The notes under the pieces are model-generated. The model made no database searches, was not told the origin of the DNA, and saw only the letters and a program-made list of their open reading frames with translations. 64,000 nt of DNA from Lytechinus pictus. Its lineage: Eukaryota. This document shows, piece after piece, positions 2,280 through 29,857 of the stretch. The DNA is taken from contig NC_087246.1 in assembly GCF_037042905.1 (NCBI RefSeq), positions 23,684,001-23,748,000 on the forward strand, read 5' to 3'. A program made the position numbers and the translations under genes. Numbering within the stretch: position 1 is the first letter of the stretch; each line of letters starts with the position of its first letter.

Positions 2280-2397
2280 ATGGAGATGCGTCTCAAGGTA
2301 TTGCTGGTCGTCTTTTTCATATCGAGACCGGTCAGTGTGTCCAGTTGGGAAAACTCTCAGACCTGGAGATCCGAAGAGCCCAAGAGATATGCCAAAG
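2280..2397 (+). CDS. Gene A exon 1: signal peptide of WSC-domain type I membrane protein
   Basis: ATG 2280 gives MEMRLKVLLVVFFISRPVSVSS (basic then hydrophobic, signal-like); ends AAA G|gttagt, phase 1. An in-frame upstream ATG at 2220 is an alternative start. Confidence 0.7.
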
Positions 2398-3997
2398 GTT
2401 AGTTCATGGAATGGGTTACTATCACTTAGGTCAGTCTACTTGTCTTTTGGTCTACACTTCCTAAGCACACTCCTGTCAGAGTGAGAAGAGGGAACCAGTC
2501 CTGAGTGAATGAAATTTCAATCTTTCAAGAGTGATTTATTACATTTTTTTGGAGTGAAAGTGTAAGATGCACACTTTCACTCCAAAAAAGGAAAAAATCT
2601 TTCTTGAAAGATTAAAATCTCATCCCATCGGGACTGGTCCTTCATCTCCTCCGAGAAGAGGCTGATTAGGGACCAAATTAGCTCTTTTGCATTTAGAGAG
2701 CTTTTTATAGTTTAATTCTTAATTATTCTGATAGGAGGTTCAATGTCCACTCCATCTGCTTATTTTTGTTTATGGCTTAGTCAAAATAAATTTTAGTTCA
2801 TAAACTGTTCATCGAGCAATATGGGGCATTGTAAGAAACATGCGATCAATTACAAGTTTATCTTTATCCCTAATTCAATCATAAGTTTTTAACATTTGAG
2901 ATTTTGCAATTGATTTCTAATATCCTTCATGAAATAAGCCGTGTAAACTGATTTGCTACTGTTAAAATTTATCTATCTTTTTCGAAATTGCAGCAGAATA
3001 TTTGCAATTGATTGCAAATATTTTCTTGCTACACCCCCTAAGTGGTGTAAAGATCAGTTGGATATTAGACGAAATGTGTATAGCCAAGCTGGAAGTAAAT
3101 CGACAAATGGTAATTAGGCAGAATGGCAAAAGACATTCAAATGCTCATAAATTTCTTATTGCTTTTCCAATTTCACTCAAACTTTCTTTGAATTTATTCA
3201 TCTTCATTTCTGCTTTCACACAAACTAGTCTCAATGGTTTTATTCTCATTCGAGGACATTGGTTCTGATACCATATAGTTTTTTTAACGGTGTGGTAGAA
3301 CATGAATACCAAAATTTATTTGGATTAAGCTCAAACGTAGATGGACGTAGATGGACAGTGTTTCACACTGTTAGAAGTAATAATGACCCATAAGGCCATG
3401 TCACATCCTGCTGTCCGATGATAAGTATATTAGAAATGAAATGAAAATCAAAGAAATGGTTGCATAGGCCTTACATTAATTTTATTTGACTTTTTTTTCA
3501 AAATTCATCTTTTATAAAGACATATCTATATACATCTAAATTTCATGGCAAGTAAAAATTGAATTTCCGAAAATCGAACAGCATATGTCGCAATGGCGTA
3601 CAGAGGGGGGGGGGGGGGGGGGGCTTGGGGCGCTTCTTCCCCCCCCCAAAAAAAAAAAAATCACGACCAAGAAACAAAGAGAAAATGAAAGAAAGAAGGG
3701 TGATATATGATACTGTTCTCTGAATATTATGTCAATATCTATCACAAAATTTTATTTTTTGAAATGAAAATGTCGAAATTTTGCTCGCTCACTTCTCTCA
3801 CTCGCAACTTTTTGTAAATTTCACGTGATGCGCCAAATCTAGCCCCCTCAAAATTTTGGCTCATCACATCACTGTCCAAAAACCATCACTCTAAGAAAAA
3901 GTTGTATTAGTGACAACCTTTTCCAAATGTTATCTCCAACATTGCATAAAGCTGAATCAAAAAATGTAAGTGCTGGTAGAACGTTTTTAAAAGGGTA

Positions 3998-4252
3998 CAC
4001 TGTAAAAACAAATATTGGGTAAAACTTTAACTAGCACGAGGGTAATTATGTTTCCAACCAATTATGGGCAGTATTTTAACCAATGCGGGAAGCATAATTG
4101 TCCAGTAAGGTTAAAAATAAGCAGCAATTATTTTAGAATGGGCAAACTATTCATCACGCTGGATAAATAAAAAAGCCCAAAAGATATGCCCAATGTTGGT
4201 TGGACACATATTTACCCTCATGGAGCATTTTTACCCAATACTTTTTAGAGTG
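3998..4252. mobile_element. CACT-ended MITE
   Basis: cactgtaaaaacaaatattgggtaaaa ... ttttacccaatactttttagagtg inverted ends; related sequence at ~7115-7340. Confidence 0.6.
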
Positions 4253-4360
4253 TAAATGCAACAGTCGGAAAAGGTTGTCACTCCTACAACCTTGTAAATG
4301 TTGATTTAACATTTCATTTTTTTTAGAGTAGATCATTGTCTTTGCTTTTCAACTTTTCAG

Positions 4361-4636
4361 ATGGTGATTTCGTCGGATGCTTTTCCCAAAGCTGCCTGAT
4401 CTCCGATTACAATTTGCAGAGCACAGTTCACATGACGCCAGATCTATGTACCAATAGTTGCAAAGCCAGAAGGTTCCCGTATGCAGCGGTGTTCAATTTT
4501 ACGGAATGCTCTTGTGCATGCGAGCTAACCTGTTCATCACAAGACAGAGATTGGGACCACGGGAGATGCGGGTTGCCCTGCAAACAAGATCAGGATAGAT
4601 TCTGTGGCGGTTTTATTGCTGCTGACGTCTACAAAG
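4361..4636 (+). CDS. Gene A exon 2: WSC domain 1
   Basis: ttttcag| acceptor, G|gtaaga donor, 276 nt, phase 1-1. FVGCF...MTPDLCTNSC...YAAV...ECSC...CGLPC.....FCGG....VY matches the WSC Cys pattern. Confidence 0.9.
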
Positions 4637-4647
4637 GTAAGAATGCA

Positions 4648-4890
4648 TGATGGTGGTGGTGGCGATGATGATAATGATGATGGTGATGATAAAAATGATT
4701 ATCATTATTATCATAACAATAACAACAACAGCAATTACAACAACAATAATAATAACAATCATCATCATTGTCATTATAATTTATTATATCAACAACAACA
4801 ATAATATATATGATGATTATATTAATGATAACAATTATAATAATAATGATAATAATAATTATGACAACAATAATGATGATAATAATTTAT
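4648..4890. repeat. Compound (GAT/AAT/AAC)n microsatellite
   Basis: Directly visible just 3' of the exon 2 donor; explains the low-complexity ORFs 4604 and 4647. Confidence 0.9.
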
Positions 4891-5184
4891 AGCAAAAATA
4901 CCCAAATTTACAAAGCGTTGAAAATAATCTGATTATGGAAAAAAAATTGTATCTATACGTTTGTTTCCTACGTTCTATTTATTCGTTTGGCTAAGGAAAA
5001 TATTCTGGGGAATCATTTCTTCGTTTTATGCTCTTGAGTTTGTTAAACATATCATGATGATATTGCTTATCGCAGGTTCTAAATCGTAGCTTCATCATCT
5101 CTGCATAGATATCAAACAAACAACAACGTGGAACTAATAAGACCTATGTATCACTTTTCCTGATACATTTTTCATAACTTGCAG

Positions 5185-5253
5185 TGTACCTTCACAGTTC
5201 TCCGAATATAGAATGTAACCGCATTATTCCAACTGATCATGAACCCGAAAAAG
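5185..5253 (+). CDS. Gene A exon 3: linker micro-exon (VYLHSSPNIECNRIIPTDHEPEK)
   Basis: cttgcag| acceptor, AAG|gtatgt donor, 69 nt, phase 1-1, open frame, one Cys. Confidence 0.7.
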
Positions 5254-5566
5254 GTATGTAGTGATATTTCTGGGGGTTATGTTTGTAGGGTAAAGTTATT
5301 CTCACCGATAAAAGGTTTTTCAGATACCTATTATAAGGTATCAGGACAAAAATTGGTCGCATATACTTTAATGATCATTGACCATTTTATGTTTGCTGAA
5401 GTCCAGACAATGTAATTAAACGTTGGGAATGGGAACGAATGAAATGGCAAGTTTATATCACATGACCTATTGGAAGGCTGCTCTCATGTAAATCTTTTTT
5501 TTTCAACAAATTTTACAAATCCATAACGTAGTTATTCTTTGACGAACTTTCGCCAAACCTTCAACA

Positions 5567-5804
5567 ATGGGTGATTTTAACTCTAGTGTTGACCTATTGG
5601 TGTTGGTGTTAGGTCAATTTTAACACGAGCATAACACCAAACATAACATGAAGATGGTCCTGAAAATTCACTCACTAGTTGTTGAGATGTCAATAGTGTG
5701 ATCTGGTTCAGTTTTACAAACTCAGAATAGTGTTTGGAGCTAGGGGAAGCAATCCAAATTCCAACACCAACACCAACGCCAACACCGGAGTTGAAATCAC
5801 CCAA
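5567..5804. mobile_element. MITE
   Basis: tgggtgattttaactctagtgttg ... caacaccggagttgaaatcaccca inverted termini. Confidence 0.65.
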
Positions 5805-6251
5805 TGTGTATATTGTGGATATTCTGCCATTTATTAAAGCAAGTTTTACAACATGGAAGCACTCCCTTAACTAAATGTCACTGACAATGTATTGATTGCA
5901 AACTGTGGGCTAAAAATTAAATGATATTAATATCAAACGGGGATTGATATATAGGTTCGTAGTCTTAACCTTTCTCATATGGGGATTTGAAATTTAGGAG
6001 AGTGATATTCAATTCATACAAAAACAAGTTTCGGAAGCTTTTTAGGTTCATGGGATTAGATAGGGAATTGCAATATAAAGAATTTAGCGGTATTTGAAAA
6101 TGAAAATCTATATTTTATTGCTTAATCTCTGAAATAGAAGTACTACGAAAATTCATTTTCCCCCATTAACTTCTGCCCGGCAGCCACTTTGCAGCGCCAG
6201 ATCCAAACAGGGTAGCAGCATCTCCCATCTCTAACGAAGCCGGGTCGTTTG

Positions 6252-6411
6252 CAGGGGCCGCGGAAGCGGGGGGGGGGGCTGGGGGGGGGGGGGCTTCAGC
6301 CCCCCACTTTTTTCCAAAACCGTGTACAAAATCGTAAAAATTACCATATGATTGTGATTTTTTGCATGGTCAGCCCCCCCCCACACTTTGAAAACCGTTC
6401 CGCGGCCCCTG
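6252..6411. mobile_element. Poly-G/poly-C MITE (CAGGGGCCGCGG TIR); inverted copy at 13521-13664
   Basis: caggggccgcggaa ... ttccgcggcccctg; the internal sequence recurs in reverse complement just 3' of gene A. Confidence 0.8.
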
Positions 6412-6776
6412 CTTTTTGTCTGACGCGCATGGGGCTCGCACTCCCGACCTTCCGATAGTGAGACGGACTCTCTACAAACTGAGCAAACACACCGGTCACA
6501 ACTTTGCATTTGTGGCGAAAATGGTTAAAACACAGATTATTTTAAACCAACAAGAATTATCATTGAGAGTGGGTAGATAGCAATTACCTCTTATACACTA
6601 CCTTTTGGTAAAATAAATAATTGTGTATGTTTAAAAAAATGTGTCCCATATAAGCAATTATGGAGAAAATCTCTCTTTTTTTTTTTTATTCACAACAGGA
6701 ATTTTAGCCCTCAGTAGGCCTACATTCGGGATAATTTCATGAGAGTTTGTGTTTACATTTATTTCTTTGTGATTAG

Positions 6777-7049
6777 ATTTCGAATACAAGGGGTGTTACG
6801 CGCAGTCGTGCATGGAATTTGATTACACTTTCAATACGACAGATTTCGAGAATGATCCCTCATCTTGCAGCGGTGCATGTCGGGAAGGCGGATTTCCAGT
6901 TGCGTCACTCTACAACCGATCGTTATGCTCTTGTTCATGTACGCATGCATGCACCAACTTTGTCTTGCCCGAGGAGTACTGTGGATTGCCATGTCCAGGG
7001 GATTCATTTAAAGCTTGCGGTGGTTTTACAAGTGTTTCTGTATACAGAG
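6777..7049 (+). CDS. Gene A exon 4: WSC domain 2
   Basis: Pyrimidine tract + gattag| acceptor, G|gtaaat donor, 273 nt, phase 1-1. YKGCY...CSGAC...LCSCSC...CGLPCPGD...CGG...VSVY parallels exon 2. Confidence 0.9.
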
Positions 7050-7915
7050 GTAAATCATTGACCCTAGCCAAACTTACAAAAAAAATGGTATTCATATACG
7101 GTATGATCAACCTACACTCTTAAAATTGTTGGGGGAAAAACGCCCTGCTTTTAACCAACCCTGGGCAACATAATACTGTCCACACAACTATTCGTTAAAG
7201 TCTTCCCAAATTGGGTAATAAAAACTAAAAATTGGGTAATAAATTTGCTCAATTGGATATTAATTTCCCAGAATATAAATATTTTTAACAACATACATTA
7301 CCCAACACAGTGGACAGTATGTTGCCCAACGTTTTAAGTGTGTAACCTGGGCTAACAGTAAACATGATCGGTAGTACTGAGCTGTTAGCAGGCATACACT
7401 GTAAAACTTCCACGGCCCCTGATGAAATATTGTTTTATCAAAGGAAAAATGATAACAGTCCCGCTGCCAAAATGACTACAGGCATAGAGGTGGAATTATG
7501 TTGAATTCGGTTTTCATTTTATTTTATTTTTGCAATTGTGGCAATTAGCAGATGATTAATCACTTTCTTATCATTTTTTAATCATTCGTGATTCCCGTGA
7601 TTTTTTCATAGTTCATGAGCAGATGAATATTCTCGATTCCAACGATTTATTTGTTTATATTTAGTCTTTCCTTTTATTATTATCATTATTATCATTATGA
7701 CAAGTATTTATTGTTGCTGTTGTAATTATAAGTATTATCAAACTTATGATTTGTCATATTTTGTTATTATCAATATATTTAATGTTTAGTGCTATCTTTT
7801 TCTATTATCTTTATAATTGTCATCATCATTATCATCTTTAACATGAGGACTATTATCATTAATTGTTATCATTATTATTAATACATTGTCCATGAATTCC
7901 ACATTTCTTGAACAG

Positions 7916-7972
7916 TGAAGACTGTAAACACATCATATACTCCCTGTTCGAAACCAGACAGTTTACTCACCG
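7916..7972 (+). CDS. Gene A exon 5: linker micro-exon (VKTVNTSYTPCSKPDSLLT)
   Basis: ttcttgaacag| acceptor, G|gtaagt donor, 57 nt, phase 1-1, one Cys; mirrors exon 3. Confidence 0.7.
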
Positions 7973-8848
7973 GTAAGTACCAGCAATTATCTTTTTTCTG
8001 AAATAATGAATGTAATCATTTTCATCATGTTCTAGTTTATAATTCAATATAGCCAAAAGTTCAGTCAGTTACCGATGTGGCTTATCATGGTATAGATCAC
8101 AATGGCCAATTTTTATATGACTGCTAGCCCTACAATACCACTACTGCTGCTGCTGCTGTTGCGGCCGCTGCTACCGCTACTATTGCTACTTCTTCTTCTT
8201 CTTCTTCTTCGTCTCGGGTCACTACATTAGTCCTGTCCAATTGAGTATACAAGATCTGGCTTTGGAGTGAGAGACTCCAGATCTTTGGCAATGCATGGCT
8301 ATGGTATAGGAGGGGCAGACTAAAAGGTATTACATGGTCTGGTCCCGGGGGGGGGGTGTAATAAATTTAAAAAATATAATGGGCCGCAGTCGAAACCTCC
8401 ATTTTCAGTCTAAATTTCCGTTCCAGAGCATTGCAAACTTAAAAAGACATTTCTATTTTTCCCCGTTCCGGAGGCCCTCAAATTTGGTTTCTCGTTACAG
8501 TGCCCGCTCAGACTCAGCGGAGCACAGTGGCAAATTGCGATCGACTGCGTTCAACGACAGCCAAAGCTCTGCGCAGCGATCCGGAGGCCGCTGATTGGTT
8601 CATCGCGCAGAAACGTCATGACCAATTTTATGCATATTCCTGCATGCAACGCTCCGAAACATAGAATTTACTATGATGCCGTTCAAGAGCATGGCATTTT
8701 CAGCAATTGTTGATACTAGAGCAGTTCTGGAGACACCCATTTTATGACCAAAGTTCAGTTCCAGAGCCCCCGATTTTCATTTTTTTGGTGCGGCACATAG
8801 GTATCATTTTATAATTCGAGTACTCCCGGGAGGGGGGAGTCAGGGGAT

Positions 8849-10186
8849 CTGGGCTCCGTAAAGCCCCTTTCACAATTGACGTACGACCTGTTTACGACCG
8901 CCTGCAACAGATTTTTCTTGTTGTTGCACGATCGATCTCTTGGTGTCTTGCGAGCACTCGCAGTGGTTGTAGACGAACGCACGAATTTGAGGTGGTCGGA
9001 GGTGGTCGTGACTGGTCGTATCTGAATCTGAACATGTTCAAAATCCAAACGCGATCAAATACGATTGGTTTACTCGCATCAGGTCGTACCATCGGTCGGG
9101 CGATCATCGTGTGAGTGTTGTTCAACGTTGTACGACTTGGTGCGAGAGGTGACACAACTACGTATAGTCGCATTTAGTCGACTGGAGGTCGTACAACACT
9201 TGCACATGCGCTAGATACCTACAGAGACCAGTCTTGCGACTGGTTGCGATAATATAAGACTGTTGCAAGACCGATCGAAATTACGGCTTACAACATTCCA
9301 CTACCGTTGCATTCGCATGTATGCGACCGTACAGCCCCTTTCACAATTGACATCCGACCAGTTTACGACCGCCTGCAACAGTTTTTTTCTGCTGTTGCAC
9401 GATCGATCTCTTGGTGACTTGCGAGCACTCGCAGTCGTTGTAGACGGTCGCACGAACTCGAGGTGGTCGTGACTGGTCACATCTGAACTTTGAACATGTT
9501 CAAAATCCGAACGCGATCAAATACGACCGATTCACTCGCATCAGCTCGTATCCGGGGTCGTACCATCGGTCGGGCGATCATCGTGGGAGTGTTGTTCAAC
9601 GTTGCACGACTTGGTGCGAGAGGTGGCACAACTAAGTAGTCGCATTTACTCTACTGGAGGTCGTACAACACTTGCACATGTGCTAGCGACCTACATGTAC
9701 AGAGACCTGTCTTGCGACTGGGTGCGATAATATGATGTGCCATAAGACTGTTGCAAGACCGATCGCAACGGCTTACAACATTGCACTACCGTTGTGTGCG
9801 ACCGTTCCCCTCGCAATCCCTCGTGCAACACTCGCATGTGATCGCACGAGCACAATAGGATCATAATCGACTTACTCGTGCAACGGGTTTTACTGGTTGT
9901 TTTTGTTGTACGGCAGCTGTTGCAACTGTGAAAGCCTATGTGCGATATTATGAGATGACTGGCGATTGATGCCTGTTGCAGCCTGTCGCACGACCAAAAG
10001 GTCGCAAGTGGTCGTACGTCAATTGTGAAAGAGGCTTAACACATACATAAGCGATCAATCGCTTAATGGACTGACAATCAAGGTCAATGTTACACGCGCA
10101 TTTGGTTTAAAATATTGACCAGGAACCAATCTGAAGTATTTTTTCATATTTGCTATTCATCGCTAAGCTTTGTGTTACGGGGCCCA
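8849..10186. mobile_element. MITE (GGGCCCCGTAACAC-type TIR) split by the 8862-10036 insertion
   Basis: ctgggctccgtaa|cac... on the left and tttgtgttacggggcccag on the right are inverted repeats once the insert is removed. Confidence 0.65.
8862..10036. mobile_element. Non-autonomous Harbinger-type element with TAA TSD and internal ~470-bp duplication
   Basis: TIRs AGCCCCTTTCACAATTGACGTACGACC / GGTCGTACGTCAATTGTGAAAGAGGCT; TAA at 8859-8861 and 10037-10039; 8862-9330 is repeated at 9332-9800. Confidence 0.88.
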
Positions 10187-10252
10187 GGTCCTCCCAACAG
10201 TCGCAGACAGTGTCTTCATCTCTACTGTAGTCCCATATCTGCATATCTTCTT

Positions 10253-10515
10253 ACACTCTAAAGGCAAAATAGCTAATCTGGTCCCTAATCACACTCCTAT
10301 CAGACGAGGGACCACTCGTTTTGGAGTGGGATTAACATCTTTTGAGAGTGCATTATATCTCCTTCCGAGTGAACAGTGTATATTTTAGACATCTTCACTC
10401 CAGAAGTAGCTATAATCCACTCTCATAAGATTTAAATCCCACTTCAAAATTATTGGTCCCTCTCACTCTGTGAGAGGAGTGTCATTGGGGACCGGATAAG
10501 TTCTTTTGCAAATAG
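10253..10515. mobile_element. CACT-ended MITE, related copy at ~2455-2700
   Basis: cactctaaaggcaaaatagctaatctggtccctaatcacactcct...gggaccggataagttcttttgca shares blocks with 2455-2700. Confidence 0.55.
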
Positions 10516-11878
10516 GCTGAAAGGGCTTGCACCGTCCTATTCCATTCTGTTGTCGGTTAAGACTTTTATAATTGGCCTTCGTCACCGTCTTGAACCAGGA
10601 TGGGGGGAATGATTCACTCGGTCAGTAGCAGAGCTTGTGCGTCACAGATTCAAGGTGGTTTCATGGACCACAGAGGCCTGGTGATCCTTTGACTGTGTGC
10701 AGAGCCATCAAGAGATTCAGTCGAGTGAAAAGAACTATTTCTAGATTTGAATCTCCTTTGTCAGGTTCATGGTTGAAGGGTTAATATAGTGTGTTAACTT
10801 CTTGCTTGTTTTTTTTTTACTATCCGTGCTGATACTTCTCTTCTGATGTGTGGTGTGGGCAATACTGCATAGTAGGTAAAGATTGTCTATTCTTGTTGAT
10901 CGCAGAGAGCGAGTGATTGATCTGCAAGCAGCATTCAGGACTGGGTCAATCTTTGCAGCATGGGGGTGACCTGCACTAGACGGGAGCTGTGTACTCAGCA
11001 GCGTATATAGCATAGAGCAAGAGCTGTGGTACGGATAGTTTTGGCATCTGTTCCTCATCGTGTGTTGGCAAGCTGCTTCATAATGATGTTCCTTGCTCCA
11101 TGCAGATTTTTTTTGTTTTTCGTAGCAATATGTTCTTTGTAGGTAAAGAAACGGATCTAGAGTGACGTCGGGGTAGATTTGCTTCCTGGTGTGTTTAGAT
11201 TATTTTCCATACCATCCGCCCTTCGGTTACCGGTCTGCGTGAAAGACGTTGAGTTGGCTTTCTCTGGATTCGGCCGGAGATGATTTGCAGCAAAGTAAGG
11301 ATAGAGTCAAACTTGCCAGAGTATCATTGAGTGCTTTTTCCACCTCTTCAAAGGATTGCTTCTGCGAGGCAATGCAGAGGTCATCAGTATACAGGTAGCT
11401 CTAATTGGTTAGTCGTTCGTGCAGATGTTAAAACAGGAGTGCATGGGGAGAGGACGCTTCCCTTTTTTAGACCATTTTTTCTGCCTCCGCCATCTGCTGC
11501 GAGAAACACTGAGATTCACAAAGAACCGCCTTTCTGAGGGCGATTTCTGGATCAGCTACTTTAGCATGACTTCCTTCGTAATCTCAAAAACCTTCCTTTT
11601 GAGGATCCTATGATTAAATGTATCATGGGCTGCAAAGCGGTCAAGAAAAGCTGCTCCAGTTACCAGCCCTTCCTCATAACCATCTTCGATGCACTGTGTC
11701 AGATTCAGCAGTTGACCAGTACAAGACATTCCTGGCGAAAATGTTAAATGCAATTAATTAGCGATGATTATGGTACAAGCATTTCCGTAAATGGAAAAAA
11801 GATTAATGAAAGTATTTTTTCCCATATTTTCCTATCTTTCTGTCCATCTAACCATATTTTCTTTTATTTTTGTTATAG

Positions 11879-13344
11879 ATAAAAGTGAGCGAAAGAGAAA
11901 CGTAGCCATCTACACGATAGTCACTTCAATCATAGTGATTGCCTTCATCATGCTTATTCTTTATGTGTGGCGAAAGAGGACCATCAAATCGCCTGTATCG
12001 AAGGGTAAGAGTAGCAGGTACTCTAACTTGAAAGTACGATATTGGGTACATTACCCAAAGAAGGGTAATCGATGCGACATTCAGCACAACGCGGTCTCTA
12101 GGCAGGATCAAGTGTCAACATCTATCTACCGTGAATTGGAACCTACATCATCAGGACAAGTAGGCCAAGCGCCACCAAGCGTCGAGAGAAATGACTTCCC
12201 TGGTGAGATCCGTTCTGAACTGAAATGGACTGCGGAGGGTCCCAACCAAATAAATTACGAATCTGTTGATACCTACCAGTATCCTGATCATATAATAGAC
12301 AGTGGAAGCAATACGGAGGATATTGATGGTCCACTGACAGGAAATGAGTATGACTACGTTGGCCTCAACTTTAAAGATATGCAAACGGAACACAGTCTGA
12401 CTTCAGAAAATCAGGTTCGGAAAAATATGTTACCTATGGTTCCAACTTACGATACTTCTATGAACCATTTAGCATTAATACATAGTTCAGACCTCAAAGA
12501 GGAGAGTAATCATAGAGAAAGTGACAACATTCAGAACTCTGAACAGTATGGAGCAGTTGGAAATCCAGTAAATCTTTCAGAAACTCTTGAAGATGCTACA
12601 TCAAACCTTTGTAATGACTTTCCTAAAACCTCCAGAGAGGTTTTTTATCAAGAACCTTGTCGTGTCGACGAAATTGTGAAAAATGATAGATCTGAAGCAC
12701 CTGAAGAAATCATTGAGCTAAATCAAGACGAAGCCACGTCGAACAGTCAGTTTGATGTACGGTCATTTCAAAATGGCACCTCTGATCAAACTGGCAACCA
12801 GAGTACAAAGACAGAACACGATGGTCATGTTTCCGAATTTCCTTTGCATAGCGATATTCACATGTATGACATTCGAATTAAAACTTCCCTCAATCCAGAT
12901 CAAACTGTAGCACCATGTGACAACCGCCAATCGTCAAAGCCACTACCCATTCAACAACTTTCTACCAACAAAAAACATTCGGTTGATGATGAAAGACAAG
13001 AATGTTCTGGAATAGCTGCAAAGGAATTCTGCCCAGAAGTTCATCACGTGCAAACTCCAATTGCAAGAGGTTCAAAAAAGAGTATATCTGGATCAGGTAA
13101 ACCGCCCAAGCCCCCACCGCCTCCTAAACGAGATCGTAAAGCAACTGCAGACACCAAGGGTTCAATGCCCGACATATCGCCTGAATGCTTCTACTCTGAG
13201 GCACATTATGGCCTTACCTCAATTGCATCCCTCTTAAAACATGAAAGACAACACGATTCACTTGAAAGCAGTCCAGTCGTAAGCCAATCCGGCGAGGACG
13301 GATACCTTATCCCTAAATCTCCTGAGGCAGCAATCAAGTATTAA
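11879..13344 (+). CDS. Gene A exon 6: TM helix plus ~455-aa cytoplasmic tail with tyrosine and proline-rich motifs
   Basis: ttttgttatag| phase-1 acceptor inside ORF 11791-13344. TM VAIYTIVTSIIVIAFIMLILYVW followed by RKR. Tail has SRYSNL, SIYREL, INYESV, NEYDYV, PPKPPPPPKR, DGYLIP. The six exons total 2259 nt with the frame intact. Confidence 0.85.
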
Positions 13345-15502
13345 TCTGCGCGTATACGTAAAAATACCGACGAGGAAAGAGACTGCCAAAATGACGGAAA
13401 TGAATACGACTTCTGAACATGCAACTAATGTACAACACAGTCCTTGCATCGATCTCCACATGGCCTGCTACCGAAAAGTGCCCCGTTTCAGGCACCCGGG
13501 CGTCGTCGAAGTGTATGGAACAGGGGCCGTGGAACGGTTTTCAAAATGGGGGGGCTGACCATGCAAAAAAATCACAATCATAATTTACGTTTTTGTACAC
13601 GGTTTTGGAAAAAAGTGTGGGGCCGGGGGGCTGAAGCCCCCCCCCCCCCCCATCCGCGGCCCCTGTGGAAAAGGGGTTGCTTTTTTTAGGATCATTCGCC
13701 AGCCATTTCCTCTTTGGGTAGCCTTTTTATCACTCGTCGCATTATTATTATAGGGTCGAAAGTTTGATCATAATATATGGATTGCGCCAATTATGGGTAA
13801 AGTTGAATTGTTTATTCATTAGGAAAAAACATGAATGAATTACAAGTTATTTTAATAAGGCTCTCTTGCATTGTGCATTGTCAAGTTACATGTTTTAGAT
13901 TAGAAGAAAACCCTTGTATAATGTTATTTGCTTACGCCACTTACATGACTTAGGTATCAGAATGAGTGAATTTTCCTTTTCTCGCTGCTTATGCTGACCT
14001 TTTCATGCGTTACGCTATTTAATACGCAAATTTAGTTACGCAGCTGAAGTCATTTAAGGTGCATTTCTGAGATTGTTGGACATGGGTAGATAGTCGGCCA
14101 TATGGAGCGAGAGAAGAACTGAAGCACGATGTTAATATCGATATTTCCAGGGCTAAGAAGAAGAAAAAAACGTGCTGTACTTTGTGGAATCATGCAGGAA
14201 TTCGGTTATTTGTATACAGATAGAATAGCATAACATGTCAGTTTAAGAAAACTATTAGGGATGCCACGAAAGTAGTAGAATTTTTCGTTTTTAACTGATA
14301 CTTTGATAATACCTTTTAAGTTGCTTTTCGGTCACCGCTCTTAACGAAAACCTTTTTCCAGGGATTTGTTCTCCTACAGTAAGATTGATGAGAATGGTTT
14401 TTAGCCAAATTGTACATGAATAATGTATACCTCATTAAACTCAATAGGAGAGATCGAAACCGTTTTATGATAAGAAATTTATCAAATAGAATGTCAATTT
14501 GTGAGTTATAAATGAAAAGAAAAATAACGTTGTTGTTTAGTCCTGTGCATTTACCATCTCGAGGCTTCATATCAGACATCATGATTAGCCATAATATCCG
14601 ACCCAACATCATCCATAATGCACATACCTAACAGTTTGATTTAGCTGAAAATACGAACTGTAACACTTGTAAGTAACACGAGACTAGATTAATATCTGCA
14701 TATTTATAGCCTATATAATTTGCAATATTAATTTGTCGTAATTATATCACAATTGATATTTTTTAGCATTATTATTATTGTATACTACGCTGACATTTTG
14801 AACATGTTGGATCACACCATTATATGTCATAAAAAGATAAAGCCATTGACATTGACAATAATGATTAATAAAGTGTAGATGAGACTATTAAAAAAAAACA
14901 CACTGGTACTAGAGATAGTGATTCAAGTATCGATGGTCGTTTATATTATTTTCCTTGTAATTTGAATACGTAATAGGAATGAATAGGCGTGATAAAAAGG
15001 GAAATAAATGGATATGATTGATTTCTGTCATGCACTGGTCGATATTGTACAGAGAGACTTGATGCACCTCACACTAATACAAAAATGCGTTATTCCAATT
15101 CGATTTTTTTCAAGGAGGGGGGTAGGTTTTGGGGAAAAAAATCTAATTTTACACATAGTGCATCATGAATCTTCTTGATGTATCCCTGTTATCTTAAATA
15201 TGCAGGTGGTTGTATGCCCAATTATTCAACCTCCATTTTTAAATTCCCATTTGACATTGGGTTGTTCTACGTAAGTGCGATTGCCAATGAATATGAGGCT
15301 AAAGTGAGAATGGTAGCAGATAATCACGAGACAGGGGCGCCGAAAGGGGGGGGGGGGCAGGAGGGGGAGATCACCGCTAAGGCCGGGCTTATTTTTGTAG
15401 TAATGAAAAGAGGGGAAAACAAGTGGGAAAAGGAACAAAAACGAGAAAGTAAACGAAAGAATGAAGAGTATTAATAAGAAAGATCTGGGTTGTGCAACTA
15501 TA

Positions 15503-16472
15503 CAGTGCGTTTAAAAAAAAGTTTACACTAAGAAAATATTAATAATCCTGTAAAATTACATATTTGTAATATCCTGAAGCCTTTTCCACCTTTAAACATT
15601 GGTACAGATCTCTTCAAGCAAAGGACGATGTAACTGTCGAAAAATCTTTCCGCTTGAGTGAGCACCGCTTACTTTTGAAAAGTTCGTGGAAAAGGATTTT
15701 CGCAGAAGTCGGAAAAAGTTATATGAATAAAATTCATGGAGAACACCTGGACTTTAGCTAGGAAGATTGATTTTAAGATATTTTTACCTCTTTAACTTGT
15801 TTCCTTGCCCAATACACTTCATAAAGTGTCATTGCACCCCCACCCCTCCCCACATGCCAAGGCTATCATGATTATAATCTGCTTTACACTGAGCATGAAA
15901 TTGGCTAAGGCTTGATTTTCCTTCTGTTAATCATTGTCATGCTTGGGAAAAGTGTGGAGAAACAAGTATTACATGAAATATGAAATGTAAATCAATTCTA
16001 AATGACAAAATTTAGTGAAAAAAATGCTGGAGATGTCAGAAATAGACTTTTGTTTACATTCAGCTCTGTCTTCAGATGCAGCTGACACAAAAAAGGAAAA
16101 GGTTGTGCTTACCGAGGGTAAAAATGTAAATTCGGGTGTCAAAGTTGTAACAAAATGTTTAAATGTATTTGTTTTATTTAAATTAGCTAAAAGTGCAAAA
16201 GAAATTATGAGAAACGTACCACACAGTCAGTTTGGTTTCGCCTTTTTTCCTTGACACAGCGTGAAAATGAGCATTTCTGCGCAAACCGATTTCTGCGAGC
16301 TTTGCAAAAATGGGCAGTGCTCACTCAAGTGTAACATTCTGTCAAAATCTTTACTTTCGTTTGATAGATGAGACCCAAACCCAAGAATATACGTGAAAAG
16401 ATTATCCCCATGTTGTATATTTTCAATTCCGAAGACTTCTTCAAAGTGTAAACTTTTTATTGATACGCACTA
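15503..16472. mobile_element. Tc1/mariner-type non-autonomous element with TA TSD
   Basis: ta|cagtgcgtttaaaaaaaagtttacact ... agtgtaaactttttattgatacgcacta|ta, with additional internal inverted blocks (cttgagtgagcac / gtgctcactcaag). Confidence 0.75.
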
Positions 16473-18416
16473 TATATTACCCGTGTTAATGAGGAAATAT
16501 GGGGTCATCTTCCTTTTCCCTATCAGAATACCACAATGCCGCCCCCGCTATCAGACAATCTAATTCGTACTCGCGATTCATCCTTCATCTCTATCATTGT
16601 GAATATTTGAAGAAGACCGAAAGCTTGGATGATTAATTTGCCGAATTTAAATTATCTATTTATTTCAGACTAATATAACACCAACTCTAGGCAATATATT
16701 CATATAGATATATTAGGTTTGTCTCGTCAATGCAGATCGTAAGTGTTGAGGTATTAAAATTTACAAACAACCAAGCCCAACACACCCTAGTAAATTGCAT
16801 GATGTTTGACAAGTGTCAACTTTTCTTTGAATTTCCTGGGTGTATGTAAACATATATATATATGTGTGTGTGTGTGTGTATATATATATAAAAGAACAAA
16901 AGGAATTTTACTCTCTCATGATCTAAATTATGATGTATAGCAAACGAAAAGAACGAACCTCAGGTTCAATGGTAGAACTGACAATGATATGGGATTATCT
17001 TTCCATATACAAGCCTTTGATAAGAAACAAACATCGGGCTTCCATTGGCGCTCTATTATAATAGTGAATAATTTGTAATACATGCATAAATTTACGATTG
17101 TTTTTAAACAATAAAATGCTAATGTAATTCAAAAGGGAGAATGCATGTAAGTTATTCTATTGTTCGCTTATATTCCATTAATTCTTCCTTGAGTTAAACA
17201 AAGTAAACCAATTAGGGGCGTCGGAGCGAAGTTGAAAGTGGGGTCACAGGGGAAAAAGACACCTTTTCTTTCGAAAAGGGCATCTTTAAACAAAATGACT
17301 TCTTCAGTGCTGTTATGAGTCAATAATTTTGAGGGGGCTAGATATGTCGTATAACGCAAAATTTTGACATTTTTAAAACAAAAATCCAATTTGTGATTTT
17401 GACATAATATTAAGAAAATTATATATTTCACATTCTCTCTTTCCTTTTCCCTTCTTTCTTGGTCGTGAATTTTTTTTCGGGGGGAAGGGCCCCAAGCCCC
17501 CCATTCTGTACGTCACTGCTTATCTACCCCACTCACATGACTCGTGAAACTTAAGGCACGTTGGATTAGTCTTACAATTTTTTTACTTTATAAATAGTAA
17601 CATCTAAAATGATATTATTGTTTTCTTGTTTCAAAGGGGCGCTCATTAACACATAAAACGGGTCCTTCTCACGGGTGAAAGGGGCACAGAACACGTTTGT
17701 GAGGGGCACTTTTCTTGGATAAAAAGGGGTACCGATACGAGAAAGGGCACCTATAAGAAAGCAAAGGGGCACTTTCTAACGGCATAAAACGGGTCCTTCC
17801 CATGTATGAAAGGGGCACAGAACATGTCTTCGTGAGGGGCACTTTTCTTGGGTAAAAAGGGGCACTGATCCGAGAAATGACACTTGCTAACACATAAAAT
17901 GGTAAAAGGTGAAAGGGGCATAGTACACGCTCGATTTGGGGGCATTTTTCTTACGTAAAAAAGGGCACTTTTCAGGGCTTCAAAAAGCGGGGGACCACTG
18001 TGCCCCCCCCCCCCGGCCCCCGTGATGGCTGCCCCTGAAACCGATGTAGAACATGCTTCTTACTTTGTGCAAAAGGGTTTCACATTATTAGCAAGTTGAA
18101 ATCTCCAATGTCACAAAATCAATCATATTTCGAGAGTGAAACATCTTAGACGAGATTAATTTCTGGATCAGTGGTGATTATCGATCAGAAACCCAATTAG
18201 AGACAGATAATAGCGGTATGGCAATACTTATCAACCCTCCAAACTCACATGGACACTCGCTAAGCATTAATTTATTAAAAAAGACTCTCTGATCAACTTA
18301 AACAGACGAGAGCCTACCTTAATCCAATATCACTATATTGTAACCACATCGACTATAGGATCTCCTCAATAGTGTCTTGCTTTTTTCTGTATATTTCCTT
18401 TTTAAAACGAGTTAAA

Positions 18417-18495
18417 ATGCATCATTTTATTGTCATCTGCATACTATTTAGTATGAATCGCTTCGCAGTATCGGGAAATGGTCACGAGACAGAAG
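18417..18495 (+). CDS. Gene B exon 1: signal peptide
   Basis: aaaATG context; MHHFIVICILFSMNRFAVSGNGHETE; GAA G|gtatgt phase-1 donor. Confidence 0.65.
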
Positions 18496-19238
18496 GTATG
18501 TTCATATTTTGAAAATCCTTTAATTAAGCATTTGAGTTTCTGTCATAATCATGACATTATGAAATAGGCCTTATTTATATTTTAAAAGTAAACTCCAAAT
18601 TTTCATTTTTTAAGTTGGAGTAAAGATAATGACTTATATCGATTTCAATCGATTGATCATTAACTTATCTAAAATGTATATAATTTACATAACATGATTA
18701 GAAAAATTGTGATTTCCCCCCAATTTTAAATATATTTATAATTCTTGTCAACTACTTTCTAATTTCAACTATCCTGATTCAGAAGTCTTACGACTATTTA
18801 GATATAAACCAAGGTAATGAAATATGTATGTTACCTGTAACCACCTAAAGATTCTTGCCTACTGTCTTCACTCTTCTTATTGTTTTTGGCCTATCGGAGA
18901 GAGTAATGTGGGACCTGTCCTGAGCCTTCCCCCCCCCCCCACGACCCCAACCAAAAGAAAAATGCTACCGATATTAGTTGAATAATATCTCCTTTTTTTA
19001 CAATAATATCAGTGAACAAGTTTTCCACTACTTGTCATATTTAAAAAAGAATTGCTTTAAGTTCATTTTGTGCCTTTATTTCTTTCTTGACCAAGTTAGC
19101 ATTATGAATTATTTTGTTGCATTATTTTCACATTGAATGCCCTTAATTTCGTTTTGGTCAGCCTATTCTGTTTAGTTTTACTTTGTTCCTTTTTTTAAAT
19201 CATATTTCATATGGTAACGTCATTGAACACCACAATAG

Positions 19239-19289
19239 AACCATGTAAAAACGGTGGATGTACAACCCAAGCAAATTTGGATACGGAAT
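19239..19289 (+). CDS. Gene B exon 2: short ectodomain micro-exon (EPCKNGGCTTQANLDTE)
   Basis: caatag| acceptor (weak pyrimidine tract), T|gtaagt donor, 51 nt, phase 1-1, frame compatible with both flanking exons. Confidence 0.5.
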
Positions 19290-19332
19290 GTAAGTATCAA
19301 CCATCGATATATATGTAATTAACCTATTGAAG

Positions 19333-19658
19333 ACGTTTACACGCTGCATCGGCTCGCGGTGCAATCCCGAGAGCCGGTGGAGACTCGGCTCGCGGATTAT
19401 CCTGCGTCGCGTTTACACGCTGCCCCAGCTCGAGGTGCAGAATCGGCTCGCGGGGCAAAAAACACAAATAAGTGGATTAAATTTACATCATGAAATGCGC
19501 GCTAATCGCCGGTGCAGACTCGGCTTCGTATTTACACGGAGAAAAAAATGCCGTGGCTGCACCGCAAGCCGGTGCATGTTAATCGCGTTTACACGCATTA
19601 AAAGGCGAGTCTGCACCTGTTCTCGGGTCTGCACCGCGAGCCGATGCAGCGTGTAAAC
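19333..19658. mobile_element. Palindromic MITE in gene B intron 2
   Basis: gtttacacgctgcatcggctcgcggtgca ... tgcaccgcgagccgatgcagcgtgtaaac, ~29-bp perfect inverted repeat. Confidence 0.85.
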
Positions 19659-20144
19659 ACGGTATATATTCTTGTAGTATGCATAAAATGTAATTGATGA
19701 TAAAATGATGATAAAGAAGGTGGTGGTTATGATTTTGATGATGACAATAATTATGATGATGATCGTGGTGATGATTTCGATGATATCAATTGTATCTACA
19801 CAGTACACACTGTTGAGGCCCTTACAAAATTGTAATGAATGTTTTGAGCAGCTATTGTTTAGCTTATTCTCCACCAAATTTTAGTATTATTTACAAGTTT
19901 ATCAATTCAACGTTGGTTTCAGAAAATCCTAATTTCGGTTTGACCATCTATGTTCTCATACTACATTTTCCCGTCATTTTATATCAGTATAATATAAGGC
20001 CTGATTCCCTGATTGTACCATTTTAGAATTACTCTTTCCTGACAAAATAATTCATGGATGTACACCCACCAGACCAATTCCATTGGTTTGTTTTTTAACT
20101 TGTAGCTTTCTTCTCCTCTCTTTTCTTTGCATAATATGAACCAG

Positions 20145-21295
20145 ATGACAGGGGTATGCTATCGACTATCCTAATTTCCATCTTCAGCACAGTTTTTGTC
20201 TGTTTTATTGTCTTCACTGTGGCTATTTTTCTTTATCGATGGCTACACAAGACAGAGTACATGGTATCTAGAAGAAATAAAGAAGAGGAGAATGTTGGAG
20301 AAAATCCCCCTACCAACATGACCAAGACGGAAGATTTCCCAACAGGTCGTCGGGTGGAACCCTCGAGACAACAGTCAACCAGAATATCAATTAAACCAAC
20401 GTTTTTTAGGTCTTCAGCGTTCAAAAATATCACAAGGAATTCTGAAGGGAGTTCAAAGGCATCCAAAGACTTCACAGGGGAGACTTGTGACAATTCAGCG
20501 CCAATCAACGAGATGGAAGGCAAGATTTACGAGGCTTCGACAGTGTTTGGAGACATTGCTATTAAGACCCAAGACGGTCCAGGGGCGTCCAGAAACATAA
20601 CTAGGAAGGTCAACGACGATTCAACGGCTTTTAGAGACATGAATAAAACGACTCACAACAGTTCAACATCGTTCAGGAGAATAAAAAAGAAAGCCCGCCA
20701 AAGTGTAGCAGCTTTTGGAGACATCAAAAGACGTGGCAATGGGAGTTCAGCAGCGTTCGGCAACATCACTCGTAGGACCCGAGACAGTTTAGCAGCTTTT
20801 GGAGATATCAGGAAGAAGACGCGACACAGTTTAGCAGCCTTTGGAGATATCAAGAGCATGGATAAGAAGGTCCGTGATAGGCTATCAGCACCTGAAACCA
20901 CCAGAACGAAAAAGGCCAGTGGCAGTGTGGCACCAAACAGAGACAACACAATTAATGACCTCGACGGTCTAGAAACAGAAGATTACTACTACGACGCAAA
21001 TTATGTCGACACCTCAATCACATCGGCCATTCAGAATGCAAAAGAAGACACAACAGCTGATAATAAGACAAACCCTAATGAAGTAGACCATGATTACATT
21101 TACCCAATTGAAAAACCAACCCAATTTCAACGCAGATTCATGGCAAGCCGAATAACGAAAGATGGGTATCTGGTACCTGAATTGCCATTACCCGAACTTC
21201 CCTCAACCACGACAGATAAATATCATTCTGCTCGTTTCTCCAGGCAACCTGGATGCCTTAAAGAGGACGAAAACATTTACTATGAGGTTGACTAA
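20145..21295 (+). CDS. Gene B exon 3: TM helix plus cytoplasmic tail with 14-aa repeats and tyrosine motifs
   Basis: Long pyrimidine tract then ccag| phase-1 acceptor in frame with ORF 20156-21295. TM ILISIFSTVFVCFIVFTVAIFLY; tail motifs DYYYDANY, DYIYP, DGYLVP, NIYYEV. Confidence 0.85.
20402..20863 (+). repeat. Coding 42-bp (14-aa) tandem repeat, ~11 degenerate units
   Basis: F (or S/I) recurs at ORF residues 89, 103, 117 ... 229 with exact period 14; best units RQSVAAFGDIKRRG, NGSSAAFGNITRRT, RDSLAAFGDIRKKT, RHSLAAFGDIKSMD. Confidence 0.85.
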
Positions 21296-21331
21296 ACTCA
21301 GTTGTGCCTACGATTTTAAGTATACCGTGAA

Positions 21332-21682
21332 CAGTGGCGTACCTAGGATTTCTCACAGGGGGGGCAAAACCGTCTGCCAAAAAAATTGACAAGCAAAATT
21401 TCGTACCAGAAAAAAATTTGACAAGCAAAAAACAAAAAAAGGTCTTCATTCACAAATGAAGGATTTCGTACCAGATAAAAATTTGACAAGCAAAAAAAAA
21501 AAAAAAGGTCTTCAAGCTCGTCAGGGGGGCAATAAAGGTATTCAAGCTCGTCAGGGGGGGGGGCAAAAAAGGGCCTTTCAAGCTCGTCAGGGGGCAGGGA
21601 TACGTCCTTTGTGCATGGGTTGTGGCTCGTCAGGGGGGGGCAGACTGCCCCATCTGCCCCCCCCCCCGTAGGTACGCTAGTG
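21332..21682. mobile_element. MITE (CAGTGGCGTACCTA TIR) with internal tcaagctcgtcagggggg repeats; inverted copy at 56505-56763
   Basis: cagtggcgtacctagg ... gtaggtacgctagtg; a near-identical reverse-complement copy lies at 56.5 kb. Confidence 0.85.
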
Positions 21683-29351: not shown

Positions 29352-29857
29352 AGATCCTCAACACTGCAGCGAGAATGGTAACCTTGAGCAAGAAACACGA
29401 ACACATAACCCCTATTCTCCGATCACTTCATTGGCTTCCGGTTCACTCTCGCATAACGTTCAAAATTCTACTCATGTATACAAAATTACCCATAATATGT
29501 CACCCAAATATCTCCAAGACCTTATTTCCCTTCGTTCTTCCTTTTCTGCCAGATCCCTACGTTCATCATATTCCAATAATTTAATTCATGGCCCTCGCAC
29601 TAAGACCCGATATGGTGATCGTGCATTTTCTGTAATTGCTCCCACCCTCTGGAACAAACTCCCAACTCATATCCAAAATGCTCCCTCCGTGGAAATTTTC
29701 AAATCGTCACTAAAAACTCACCTTTTCTCATAACTTGTTTTCTTTTTCTTTTTTTCTTTTTTAATGGATTGACTGTATATTATTATAATCTGCCAACCTG
29801 TGCGCTTTGAAACACCAGTATATAAAGCGCCCTACAAATGTTATTATTATTATTATT
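29352..29857 (+). mobile_element. 3' fragment of a related L2/CR1-group LINE
   Basis: NTAARMVTLSKKHEHITPILRSLHWLP (frameshift) ...YGDRAFSVIAPTLWNKLP...FKSSLKTHLFS, with the same gcgccctacaaatgtta(tta)n tail as 46575-46612. Confidence 0.9.

Follow-up and report, generated by a model that had tools for sequence, protein, structure and literature searches.

Tandem sea-urchin paralogs encoding a WSC-domain membrane protein and a WSC-less relative with tyrosine-motif cytoplasmic tails

Two neighboring genes in a 64,000-nucleotide stretch of Lytechinus pictus DNA (the window) were found to be tandem paralogs from a small family that has so far been found only in sea urchins. Gene A (LOC129282724) encodes a membrane protein with WSC domains, and gene B (LOC135153284) a transcribed protein without them; both correspond exactly to L. 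pictus RefSeq models, each of which is labeled “uncharacterized”. The structure and paralogy of the two genes, as given here (Table 1), are put forward with high confidence. As for their function, the best explanation, to which we give about an even chance, is that the family consists of glycan-binding surface proteins with disordered, SH2-docking tails and that B is a derivative that has lost WSC and is still expressed. The WSC-carrying members would bind extracellular carbohydrate, the conserved tail tyrosines would be phosphorylated by cytoplasmic kinases and dock SH2-domain proteins, and B would present these docking sites while binding no ligand itself, so as either to provide a scaffold or to compete with the full-length receptors. 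None of A, B, and three relatives searched by locus name is named in the searchable literature, in keeping with the suggestion of an undescribed system in the earlier note, which had been made from the sequence alone.

Table 1 Features of genes A and B in the window
Feature	Position	Strand	Remarks
A exon 1	2220..2397	+	hydrophobic signal segment; phase-1 donor
A exon 2, WSC domain 1	4361..4636	+	92 codons, phase 1-1; Pfam WSC E=1.1e-10
A exon 3, linker between WSC domains	5185..5253	+	23 codons
A exon 4, WSC domain 2, cassette exon	6777..7049	+	Pfam WSC E=8.7e-8
A exon 5, juxtamembrane stalk	7916..7972	+	N-glycosylation sequon and one Cys; homologous to B first coding exon
A exon 6, TM helix and cytoplasmic tail	11879..13344	+	TM helix 11902-11970; ends at TAA 13342-13344
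A ITIM-like strings	12013..12267	+	SRYSNL 12013-12030, SIYREL 12121-12138, INYESV 12250-12267
A shortened C-terminal motif module	13180..13341	+	FYSEAHY...DGYLIP...KY
In-frame stretch 3' of A stop	13345..13416	+	SAR...C...N-E-Y-D-F, then TGA
Likeliest candidate for the previously proposed B signal exon	18417..18495	+	unsupported; no in-frame canonical acceptor downstream
B first coding exon	19144..19289	+	transcribed from at least 19144; ATG 19211; phase-1 donor 19289
B TM and tail exon	20145..21295	+	TM helix about 20159-20236; stop 21293-21295
B-specific repeat array	20405..20881	+	14-residue repeats, consensus ..AAFGDI+R....S
B complete C-terminal motif module	20972..21292	+	YYYDANY, HDYIYP, DGYLVPELP, KYHSAR, C..., NIYYEVD

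Translation of A starts at ATG 2220 in the RefSeq model or at ATG 2280 in an older model, as in the earlier note. All of its internal exons are of phase 1-1 and have GT-AG sites, and the joined exons reproduce the RefSeq protein exactly; the small linker and stalk exons are additional to the plan stated previously. Against PF01822 (gathering score 27.8 bits), the two WSC exons scored 42.1 and 32.7 bits and the whole protein 58 bits (E=1.1e-15), and these hits, together with one TM helix, bear out the reading of A as a single-pass membrane protein with two WSC modules. The exon of WSC domain 2 is skipped in the 661-aa model P0002. With a family WSC HMM, no third WSC exon was detected in the window (best other match E=0.69), both WSC exons belonging to A. 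The single stalk Cys of A is apparently unpaired, and the cytoplasmic tail comprises about 460 aa.

Gene B has a much simpler layout. Its first coding exon contributes 27 codons, which specify two Cys and an N-glycosylation sequon, and the TM and tail exon begins in phase 1 with “at”, exactly as in A. The protein thus has 30 residues before the TM helix, followed by a 350-aa tail modelled as disordered (Atlas pLDDT 0.43), which agrees with the previous description of an adaptor-like sibling almost without an ectodomain (about 30 residues with two Cys). B is transcribed and is spliced at the canonical sites of the RefSeq model: in run X1, the only public run with B (library type unknown, depth low), contigs cover 19144-19289 and 20145-21361, ending and starting exactly at the predicted donor and acceptor. 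At the same time, the signal exon formerly assigned to B turned out not to be real. The likeliest candidate for it is unable to join the Cys exon because of an in-frame TAA at 19196 with no AG between this codon and the ATG, and a run X1 contig (18448-18692) is unspliced across the proposed donor. Neither a signal peptide nor any upstream coding exon that could be joined was found for B. As the earlier note had stated, one exon encodes the TM helix and tail in each gene.

The ATG of B sits where the stalk exon of A begins, and the two stalks resemble each other more than shuffled sequences do (P=0.007). The exons for the signal, the WSC domains, and the linker are gone from B, and its start ATG lies at the former stalk-exon acceptor site. 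The TM helix of B is flanked by acidic residues before it (EYDRG) and basic residues after it (RWLHK...RR), so that a signal-anchor (type III), N-out topology is predicted from the positive-inside rule. The repeat array that follows in the tail is composed of six consecutive units at an exact 14-aa spacing and two degenerate units upstream.

Direct comparison of A with B gave only E=0.004, and their similarity exceeds chance only via relatives: the C-terminus of B matched the Strongylocentrotus purpuratus ortholog of A (itself 36% identical to A) with E=1e-12 and 43% identity over 72 aa, and a family profile recovered both genes, which confirmed the tandem paralog pair. The family was defined by a single phase-1 TM and tail exon and by the presence, C-terminally, of H-E/D-Y-x-Y-P, D-G-Y-L/I, and a Y-x-S-S/A-R unit. 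When 1.84 billion proteins were searched with a profile, nine hits were obtained, and all of the named ones were from Lytechinus or Strongylocentrotus; protein searches yielded an L. variegatus ortholog for neither A nor B. A genome search revealed at least five members in L. pictus, namely two on contig C2 (A and B) and three on contig C17, each of the latter with a WSC exon, so that four members carry the domain and only B lacks it. The Pfam WSC domain was also matched in a C17 paralog (31.6 bits) and in the S. purpuratus ortholog of A, and no Pfam family was matched in B or in any of the tails. In the general family plan, a signal peptide precedes one or two WSC domains, which are followed by a short stalk with Cys, by a TM helix, and by a long cytoplasmic tail that is disordered. 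The end of this tail displays, in this order, F/I-Y-x-E...G..S-S-V, H-E/D-Y-x-Y-P, D-G-Y-L/I-x-P/A, and at least one Y-Y-S-S-R-like unit.

The motifs by which the family was defined are complete in B and in the three C17 genes, and in A only D-G-Y is retained, the others being degraded or located 3' of the stop. The C-terminal elements that had been reported as common to both genes, DGYL(I/V)P, KY.SAR, and N.Y, do exist in the DNA of each, but the “x” of KYxSAR in A is the TAA stop itself, so that SAR...N-E-Y lies outside the open reading frame of A. This TAA removes the last 23 codons of the module, and the stretch beyond it is still alignable with the C-termini of B and a C17 paralog; the remaining part has internal deletions relative both to the S. 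purpuratus ortholog and to B. The tail end of A is thus decaying, which could mean that the module is dispensable and so counts against a docking role.

The same decay (premature stop and deletions) would suit a quite different explanation, in which B is the relic of a partial duplication, transcribed but without function, with no joint A/B biology, and A itself may drift towards loss. The low contig depth for B, its lack of a signal peptide and a ligand-binding domain, and the failure of protein searches to find an ortholog of B in any other species are in line with this explanation as well. However, the last exon of B retains an open frame of 383 codons even though most of the tail is unalignable with that of A, which argues for coding selection; moreover, the family-invariant residues are better kept in B than in A, including positions common only with the distant C17 paralogs, splicing of B is canonical, and B has gained a regular repeat array. 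We therefore consider the relic explanation rather improbable.

Three strings matching the ITIM consensus (S/I/V/L-x-Y-x-x-I/V/L) are indeed present in the tail of A, against 0.71 expected by shuffling (P only 0.03), and they formed part of the proposal that A is an ITIM inhibitory lectin receptor and B its physically associated signaling adaptor, comparable to DAP12, FcR-gamma, or LAT. An adaptor-like build of B, the loss by A and retention by B of the distal motif module, as if functions had been divided, and the possibility of disulfide-linked dimers between the stalk Cys of A and the two ectodomain Cys of B all accord with such a pairing. The strings themselves, however, are not conserved, and lack of conservation of the Tyr motifs in orthologs is what the earlier note had named as a refutation: in the S. 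purpuratus ortholog, not one of the three still reads as an ITIM, two having His and Ser instead of Tyr and the third having Glu at +3, and no ITIM-like strings occur in the tails of the other family members. On these grounds, a role of A as an ITIM inhibitory receptor is not supported. The pairing fares no better, as neither TM helix contains a charged residue, B has no ITAM (Y-x-x-L/I, 6-12 residues, Y-x-x-L/I), and the three other WSC members possess their own complete tails with no adjoining WSC-less partner. The receptor–adaptor explanation is accordingly judged very unlikely, and any direct partnership between A and B is just as doubtful.

The explanation preferred here, SH2 docking by the tails of glycan-binding surface proteins, draws on what is conserved in the tails. 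No tail residue is conserved as well as Tyr (12/17, compared with 37% overall; Fisher P=0.0046), which fits a tyrosine-motif function. D-G-Y is invariant in all nine tails (9/9), as part of a site in which an acidic residue precedes D-G-Y and two hydrophobic residues and a Pro follow it, with another Pro two to three residues further on; it reads KDGYLVPELPLP in B and EDGYIIPNRP in one C17 member. Conserved Tyr in disordered tails can also serve sorting or non-phospho contacts, and phosphotyrosine docking by these tails is proposed tentatively, with somewhat less than even confidence. Binding of the PLCgamma1 C-SH2 domain to the PDGFR peptide DNDpYIIPLPDPK has been documented (PMC7337045). Judged by its sequence, the D-G-Y-hydrophobic-hydrophobic-Pro site fits the PLCgamma/Crk ligand class and not the ITIM class. 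Some C17 members have Ala instead of Pro at D-G-Y +3, so that one SH2 class cannot suit all members.

A more specific version of this explanation, which we regard as highly speculative and very improbable, would make the proteins sea-urchin-specific docking platforms for PLCgamma- or Src-family SH2 domains that couple WSC glycan recognition to Ca2+ signaling. A and B would then have divided an ancestral job, with A providing the WSC ectodomain with a decaying docking module and B only the docking module, and the two might be joined via their stalk cysteines. Echinoderm egg activation needs SH2 domains of SFK and PLCgamma, and its upstream membrane component is reported to be unknown (PMC11593052). 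If the platform version were true, such a protein would be a candidate in egg activation or in coelomocytes.

Should the tails prove to be phosphotyrosine scaffolds, the family would represent a non-vertebrate, lineage-specific group of tyrosine-motif receptors that are non-catalytic and carry WSC in the ectodomain; WSC, a carbohydrate-binding fold, is not known to act in this way in animals. B would then be a natural experiment in adaptor origin, leading from a full receptor through 5' exon loss to a start codon located at the site of the former acceptor. If the tails are not scaffolds, five uncharacterized genes still receive a corrected annotation, and B is a clean case of a truncated duplicate in which the ancestral tail module has survived longer than in its parent. 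L. pictus is genetically manipulable, and knock-outs are therefore feasible.

Among known systems, the fungal Wsc1-4 cell-wall integrity sensors share with A and the C17 genes the order of signal peptide, WSC, stalk, TM helix, and tail. The nearest solved structure by sequence was 7pz2, which we take to be the cysteine-rich domain of yeast Wsc1, although the match of the WSC region was weak (E=0.004). Together with the disorder of the tails, this likeness would allow the family to be one of surface or matrix sensors or adhesion proteins of the Wsc1 type, the tyrosines of which act unphosphorylated in sorting, endocytosis, or cytoskeletal contacts. Fungal Wsc-type sensors have a Ser/Thr-rich stalk and a short tail binding Rom2, whereas the sea-urchin stalks are only 19-33 residues long (longer only in A, where the WSC2 exon and the linker intervene) and are not Ser/Thr-rich, and the tails are long, rich in Tyr motifs, and without similarity to fungal proteins. 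In addition, most of the conserved sites take the form Y-x-x-P or Y-Y-S-S-R, in contrast to AP-2 signals, which are Y-x-x-hydrophobic, and A contains a second WSC domain, one of the two being subject to alternative splicing. A Wsc1-like function is considered unlikely. Kremen1/2 and polycystin-1 are, like A, animal membrane proteins with a Pfam WSC domain in the ectodomain; A differs from them in being single-pass and having a different tail, and Kremen identity (kringle, WSC, and CUB) was rejected, because only WSC was matched by Pfam (no kringle, CUB, PKD, REJ, or GPS domains). The ITIM receptors share with A the three consensus strings, but its ectodomain is neither Ig-like nor C-type lectin. 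Compared with the PLCgamma docking site of PDGFR, the family shares only the short motif, has no kinase domain, and in several members carries Ala for Pro.

For B, a type such as DAP12, FcR-gamma, or CD3-zeta was rejected by its uncharged helix and the lack of a Y-x-x-L/I pair. Poxvirus A36R is an architectural analogue; the language-model features of B were nearest the A36R, SCIMP, and LIME1 clusters at 0.83-0.87, which is chance level, as one third of shuffled proteins reach 0.8. LAT, PAG/Cbp, LIME1, and SCIMP resemble B in lacking a signal peptide, in having only a very short N-terminal ectodomain, and in combining a single TM helix with a long disordered tail that contains several Tyr motifs. 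B has no sequence homology to them (no Pfam family) and no juxtamembrane Cys motif for palmitoylation after its TM helix, the sole nearby Cys being inside the helix. Unlike the vertebrate TM adaptors, B arose when exons of a WSC receptor were lost, and it contains a 14-aa repeat array.

Both genes of the pair, which lie on contig C2 of Lytechinus pictus (window at 23,684,001-23,748,000), are already annotated in RefSeq, each as 'uncharacterized protein', yet they are undescribed, and a literature search under the locus names or for WSC in sea urchin returned nothing about them. The canonical GT-AG exons of gene A (LOC129282724), when joined, gave exactly the 772-aa protein model (P0001), with phase 1-1 for all four internal exons. 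The two WSC modules proposed in the earlier note were recovered, each of the corresponding exons passing the Pfam gathering score, and the WSC2 exon is absent from the second, 661-aa model (P0002) and therefore behaves as a cassette. The last intron of A carries a GC-rich block (43-48% vs ~35% nearby) with internally duplicated segments and two ORFs encoding near-identical peptides; this block is probably a repeat or transposon insertion.

Coordinates of the genes and other features (window positions unless a contig or locus is named)
Feature	Position	Strand	Description
A exon 1	2220-2397	+	start codon, signal segment
A exon 2	4361-4636	+	WSC1
A exon 3	5185-5253	+	linker
A exon 4	6777-7049	+	WSC2
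A exon 5	7916-7972	+	stalk
A exon 6	11879-13344	+	TM helix, tail
GC-rich block	8000-11800		last intron of A
Last-intron ORFs of A	8876-9025, 9263-9472		near-identical peptides
Candidate B signal exon	18417-18495		rejected
B upstream stop	19196		in-frame TAA
B start	19211		ATG
X1 contig	18448-18692		colinear with genome
X1 contig	19144-19289		ends at B donor
X1 contig	20145-21361		starts at B acceptor
B 14-residue repeat	20405-20881	+	tail
High-depth repeats in X1	16200-16600, 17600-18000, 21400-21700
Paralogous intronless ORFs	25448-26794, 51863-53131	-	448 and 422 aa
Reverse-transcriptase-like ORF	44293-46380	+	695 aa
Shorter related ORFs	29096-29733
C17 genes	C17:23,195,453-23,231,496	-	three tandem genes
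ORF adjoining C17 cluster	L013:5937-6458 (G000:C17 ~23,235,036-23,235,557)	+	C-P-W...C-x-C...C-A-C pattern

For gene B (LOC135153284; 409-aa protein, P0004), the signal exon that had been assigned to it was not borne out. An in-frame TAA lies upstream of its ATG and no AG occurs from the one to the other, so that an upstream exon cannot be joined to B in frame through a canonical acceptor. The most likely candidate for this exon, which has a good phase-1 donor, was ruled out by the upstream stop without acceptor, together with an unspliced contig that runs colinear with the genome straight across the proposed donor. This contig comes from X1, the sole public sequencing run returned by the run search and the only source of RNA evidence for B; it is stored as contigs, its library type is not on record, and it provided three unique contigs at the B locus. 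The start of another of these contigs coincides exactly with the predicted acceptor of B, and the third ends exactly at the predicted donor, followed by 13 further letters that do not match the genome. Because two contig ends fall on two splice sites, an RNA origin is indicated rather than low-coverage DNA, and we conclude that transcription and splicing of B follow the RefSeq model, the junction itself being inferred from the contig ends. Note that X1 also contains high-depth repeat elements, with summed contig depths of hundreds to thousands, one of which, directly 3' of B, interrupts the B contig at position 21361.

The short N-terminus of B was confirmed in the RefSeq protein: 30 residues, including two Cys and one N-glycosylation sequon, precede the TM helix. 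The residues flanking the helix are acidic on its N-terminal side and basic on its C-terminal side, and under the positive-inside rule B would be a signal-anchor protein oriented N-terminus out; its tail comprises ~350 aa. Part of this tail follows a strict 14-residue period (..S-x-A-A-F-G-D-I-K/R-K/R-x-x-x-S; six consecutive units and two older ones), visible at the protein level only, as TRF found no DNA tandem repeats in the tail. The repeat is absent in A, in its ortholog and in the C17 gene of the same family, and its basic residues followed by Ser may resemble basophilic-kinase sites.

The paralogy of A and B, weak in direct comparison (E=0.004 only), became evident through the Strongylocentrotus purpuratus ortholog of A (LOC105440652, P0003), which is 36% identical to A over the tail and matches the C-terminus of B at E=1e-12 (43% identity, 72 aa). 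A mid-tail island, V-G-x-N...D-F-P-x-x-R, is common to all three proteins. Moreover, the first coding exon of B resembles the stalk exon of A (V-x-x-x-N-T-S/T-x-x-P-C; shuffle P=0.007), both lie directly 5' of the TM exon with a phase-1 donor, and the position of B's ATG is that of the acceptor of A's stalk exon; at the DNA level, the two stalk exons have diverged too far for informative alignment. The family HMM and a motif scan found no other WSC exon or relic in the window, including upstream of B. The tandem paralogy thus stands, and B therefore descends from an A-type gene through loss of its signal, WSC and linker exons.

The C-terminal ends of the two genes agreed with the earlier description only in part. 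The D-G-Y-L-I-P and K-Y of A are in its reading frame, but the 'x' of the reported KYxSAR is a TAA stop (...D-G-Y-L-I-P-K-S-P-E-A-A-I-K-Y-TAA), and S-A-R onward lies beyond it. For 23 codons 3' of this stop the same frame stays open and can be aligned with B and a C17 paralog, through S-A-R, a conserved Cys, acidic residues and N-x-Y to a further stop. A sequencing error is unlikely: both protein models of A end at K-Y, yet a single residue distinguishes them (N/S in SRYS[N/S]L), which places the stop on two different alleles or assemblies. Readthrough was also weighed and judged unlikely, since TAA is the least leaky stop codon and the next codon, TCT, provides no readthrough context known to us. 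A deletion in A has also removed an H-x-Y-I stretch kept in B and in the S. purpuratus ortholog, whose annotated protein ends just past D-G-Y-L-V-P-E-L-P-S-P. So, the ancestral tail end is better preserved in the WSC-less B than in the full-length A.

The three ITIM-consensus strings reported for A are present (P0001 residues 330, 366 and 409), but none is kept as an ITIM in S. purpuratus, where the Tyr of SRYSNL is His, that of SIYREL is Ser and INYESV reads IIYDPE; these motifs are therefore not conserved, an outcome that the earlier note had itself named as refuting, and the ortholog has no ITIM-like strings at all. Shuffling of the tail gave a mean of 0.71 such strings, and at least three in 3% of trials. 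At the same time, Tyr is the best-conserved residue of A's tail: S. purpuratus keeps 12 of 17, whereas identity over all residues is 37% (one-sided Fisher test, P=0.0046). The conserved sites are R-Y-W, N-Q-I-x-Y, Y-Q-Y-P-D, E-Y-D-Y-V-G, E-Q-Y, Y-Q-E-P (aligned to H-Y-P-E), H-M-Y, F-Y-S-E-A-H-Y and D-G-Y-L, several being of the Y-x-x-P form. The F-Y-S-E-A-H-Y island is triplicated in P0003 as a ~45-aa tandem repeat (residues ~505-625); in L. pictus, A has a single good copy beside a degraded one (F-C-P-E-V-H-H).

When 1.84 billion representative proteins were searched with a C-terminal module profile, nine matched, the named ones being without exception from Lytechinus or Strongylocentrotus and none having a described function. 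The module consists, in this order, of F/I-Y-x-E...G-x-S/T-S-I/V, H-E/D-Y-x-Y-P, S/N-R-I/V-x-x-D-G-Y-L/I-hydrophobic-P/A...P, a Y-Y-S-S-R-I-like unit present one to three times and, in some members only, a conserved Cys with a final Y-Y; D-G-Y is invariant (9/9 tails). Three additional L. pictus genes with this module lie within ~36 kb on contig C17, each containing a WSC exon plus a phase-1 exon for the TM helix and tail. No Pfam family matches any of the family tails, and B has a low-confidence model in the ESM Atlas (pLDDT 0.43); the tails are therefore disordered carriers of short linear motifs, not folded domains.

The C17 cluster spans loci L003, L013, L017 and L019-L023; one of its genes has three copies of a Y-Y-S-S/T-R/K-I unit, and some short fragments there are named 'xylosyltransferase oxt-like' in RefSeq, which looks like an automatic misnomer. 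An ORF adjoins this cluster whose cystine-knot pattern we take to be interleukin-17-like; sea urchins have an expanded IL-17 family. Within the window, two intronless paralogous ORFs in tandem, 25 kb apart, show rhodopsin-type GPCR hallmarks (D-R-Y-W after TM3, N-P-F-L-Y in TM7, a long third loop), and the 695-aa ORF looks, from sequence alone, like a non-LTR retrotransposon reverse transcriptase.

Nothing supports a physical A-B pair, as had been suggested: both TM helices lack charged residues, B carries no ITAM, and the three C17 receptors have complete tails and no truncated neighbour. Complex prediction for A residues 255-345 (stalk, TM, juxtamembrane) with B residues 1-85 gave 0.02 against a mark of 0.34, which is evidence neither way. 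Given the single stalk Cys in A, in its ortholog and in the annotated C17 gene LOC129280083, and the two ectodomain Cys of B, disulfide-linked dimers are conceivable. Going by how WSC domains behave in general, those of this family would bind extracellular carbohydrate. The conserved tail tyrosines could be phosphorylated and dock SH2 domains, and B might act as a ligand-independent scaffold or competitor. The earlier observation is thus partly confirmed and its interpretation partly supported.

The family's invariant site, D-G-Y-L/I-hydrophobic-P...P, is similar to DNDpYIIPLPDPK, the PDGFR peptide known from structural work as a ligand of the C-SH2 domain of PLCgamma1 (PMC7337045); the likeness is one of short motifs. 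Single-pass receptors that combine a lectin-like ectodomain with a tyrosine-motif tail, accompanied by an adaptor-like truncated sibling, are a familiar kind of protein; new here are the WSC ectodomain in such a receptor role, the particular C-terminal motif module and the route by which B arose.
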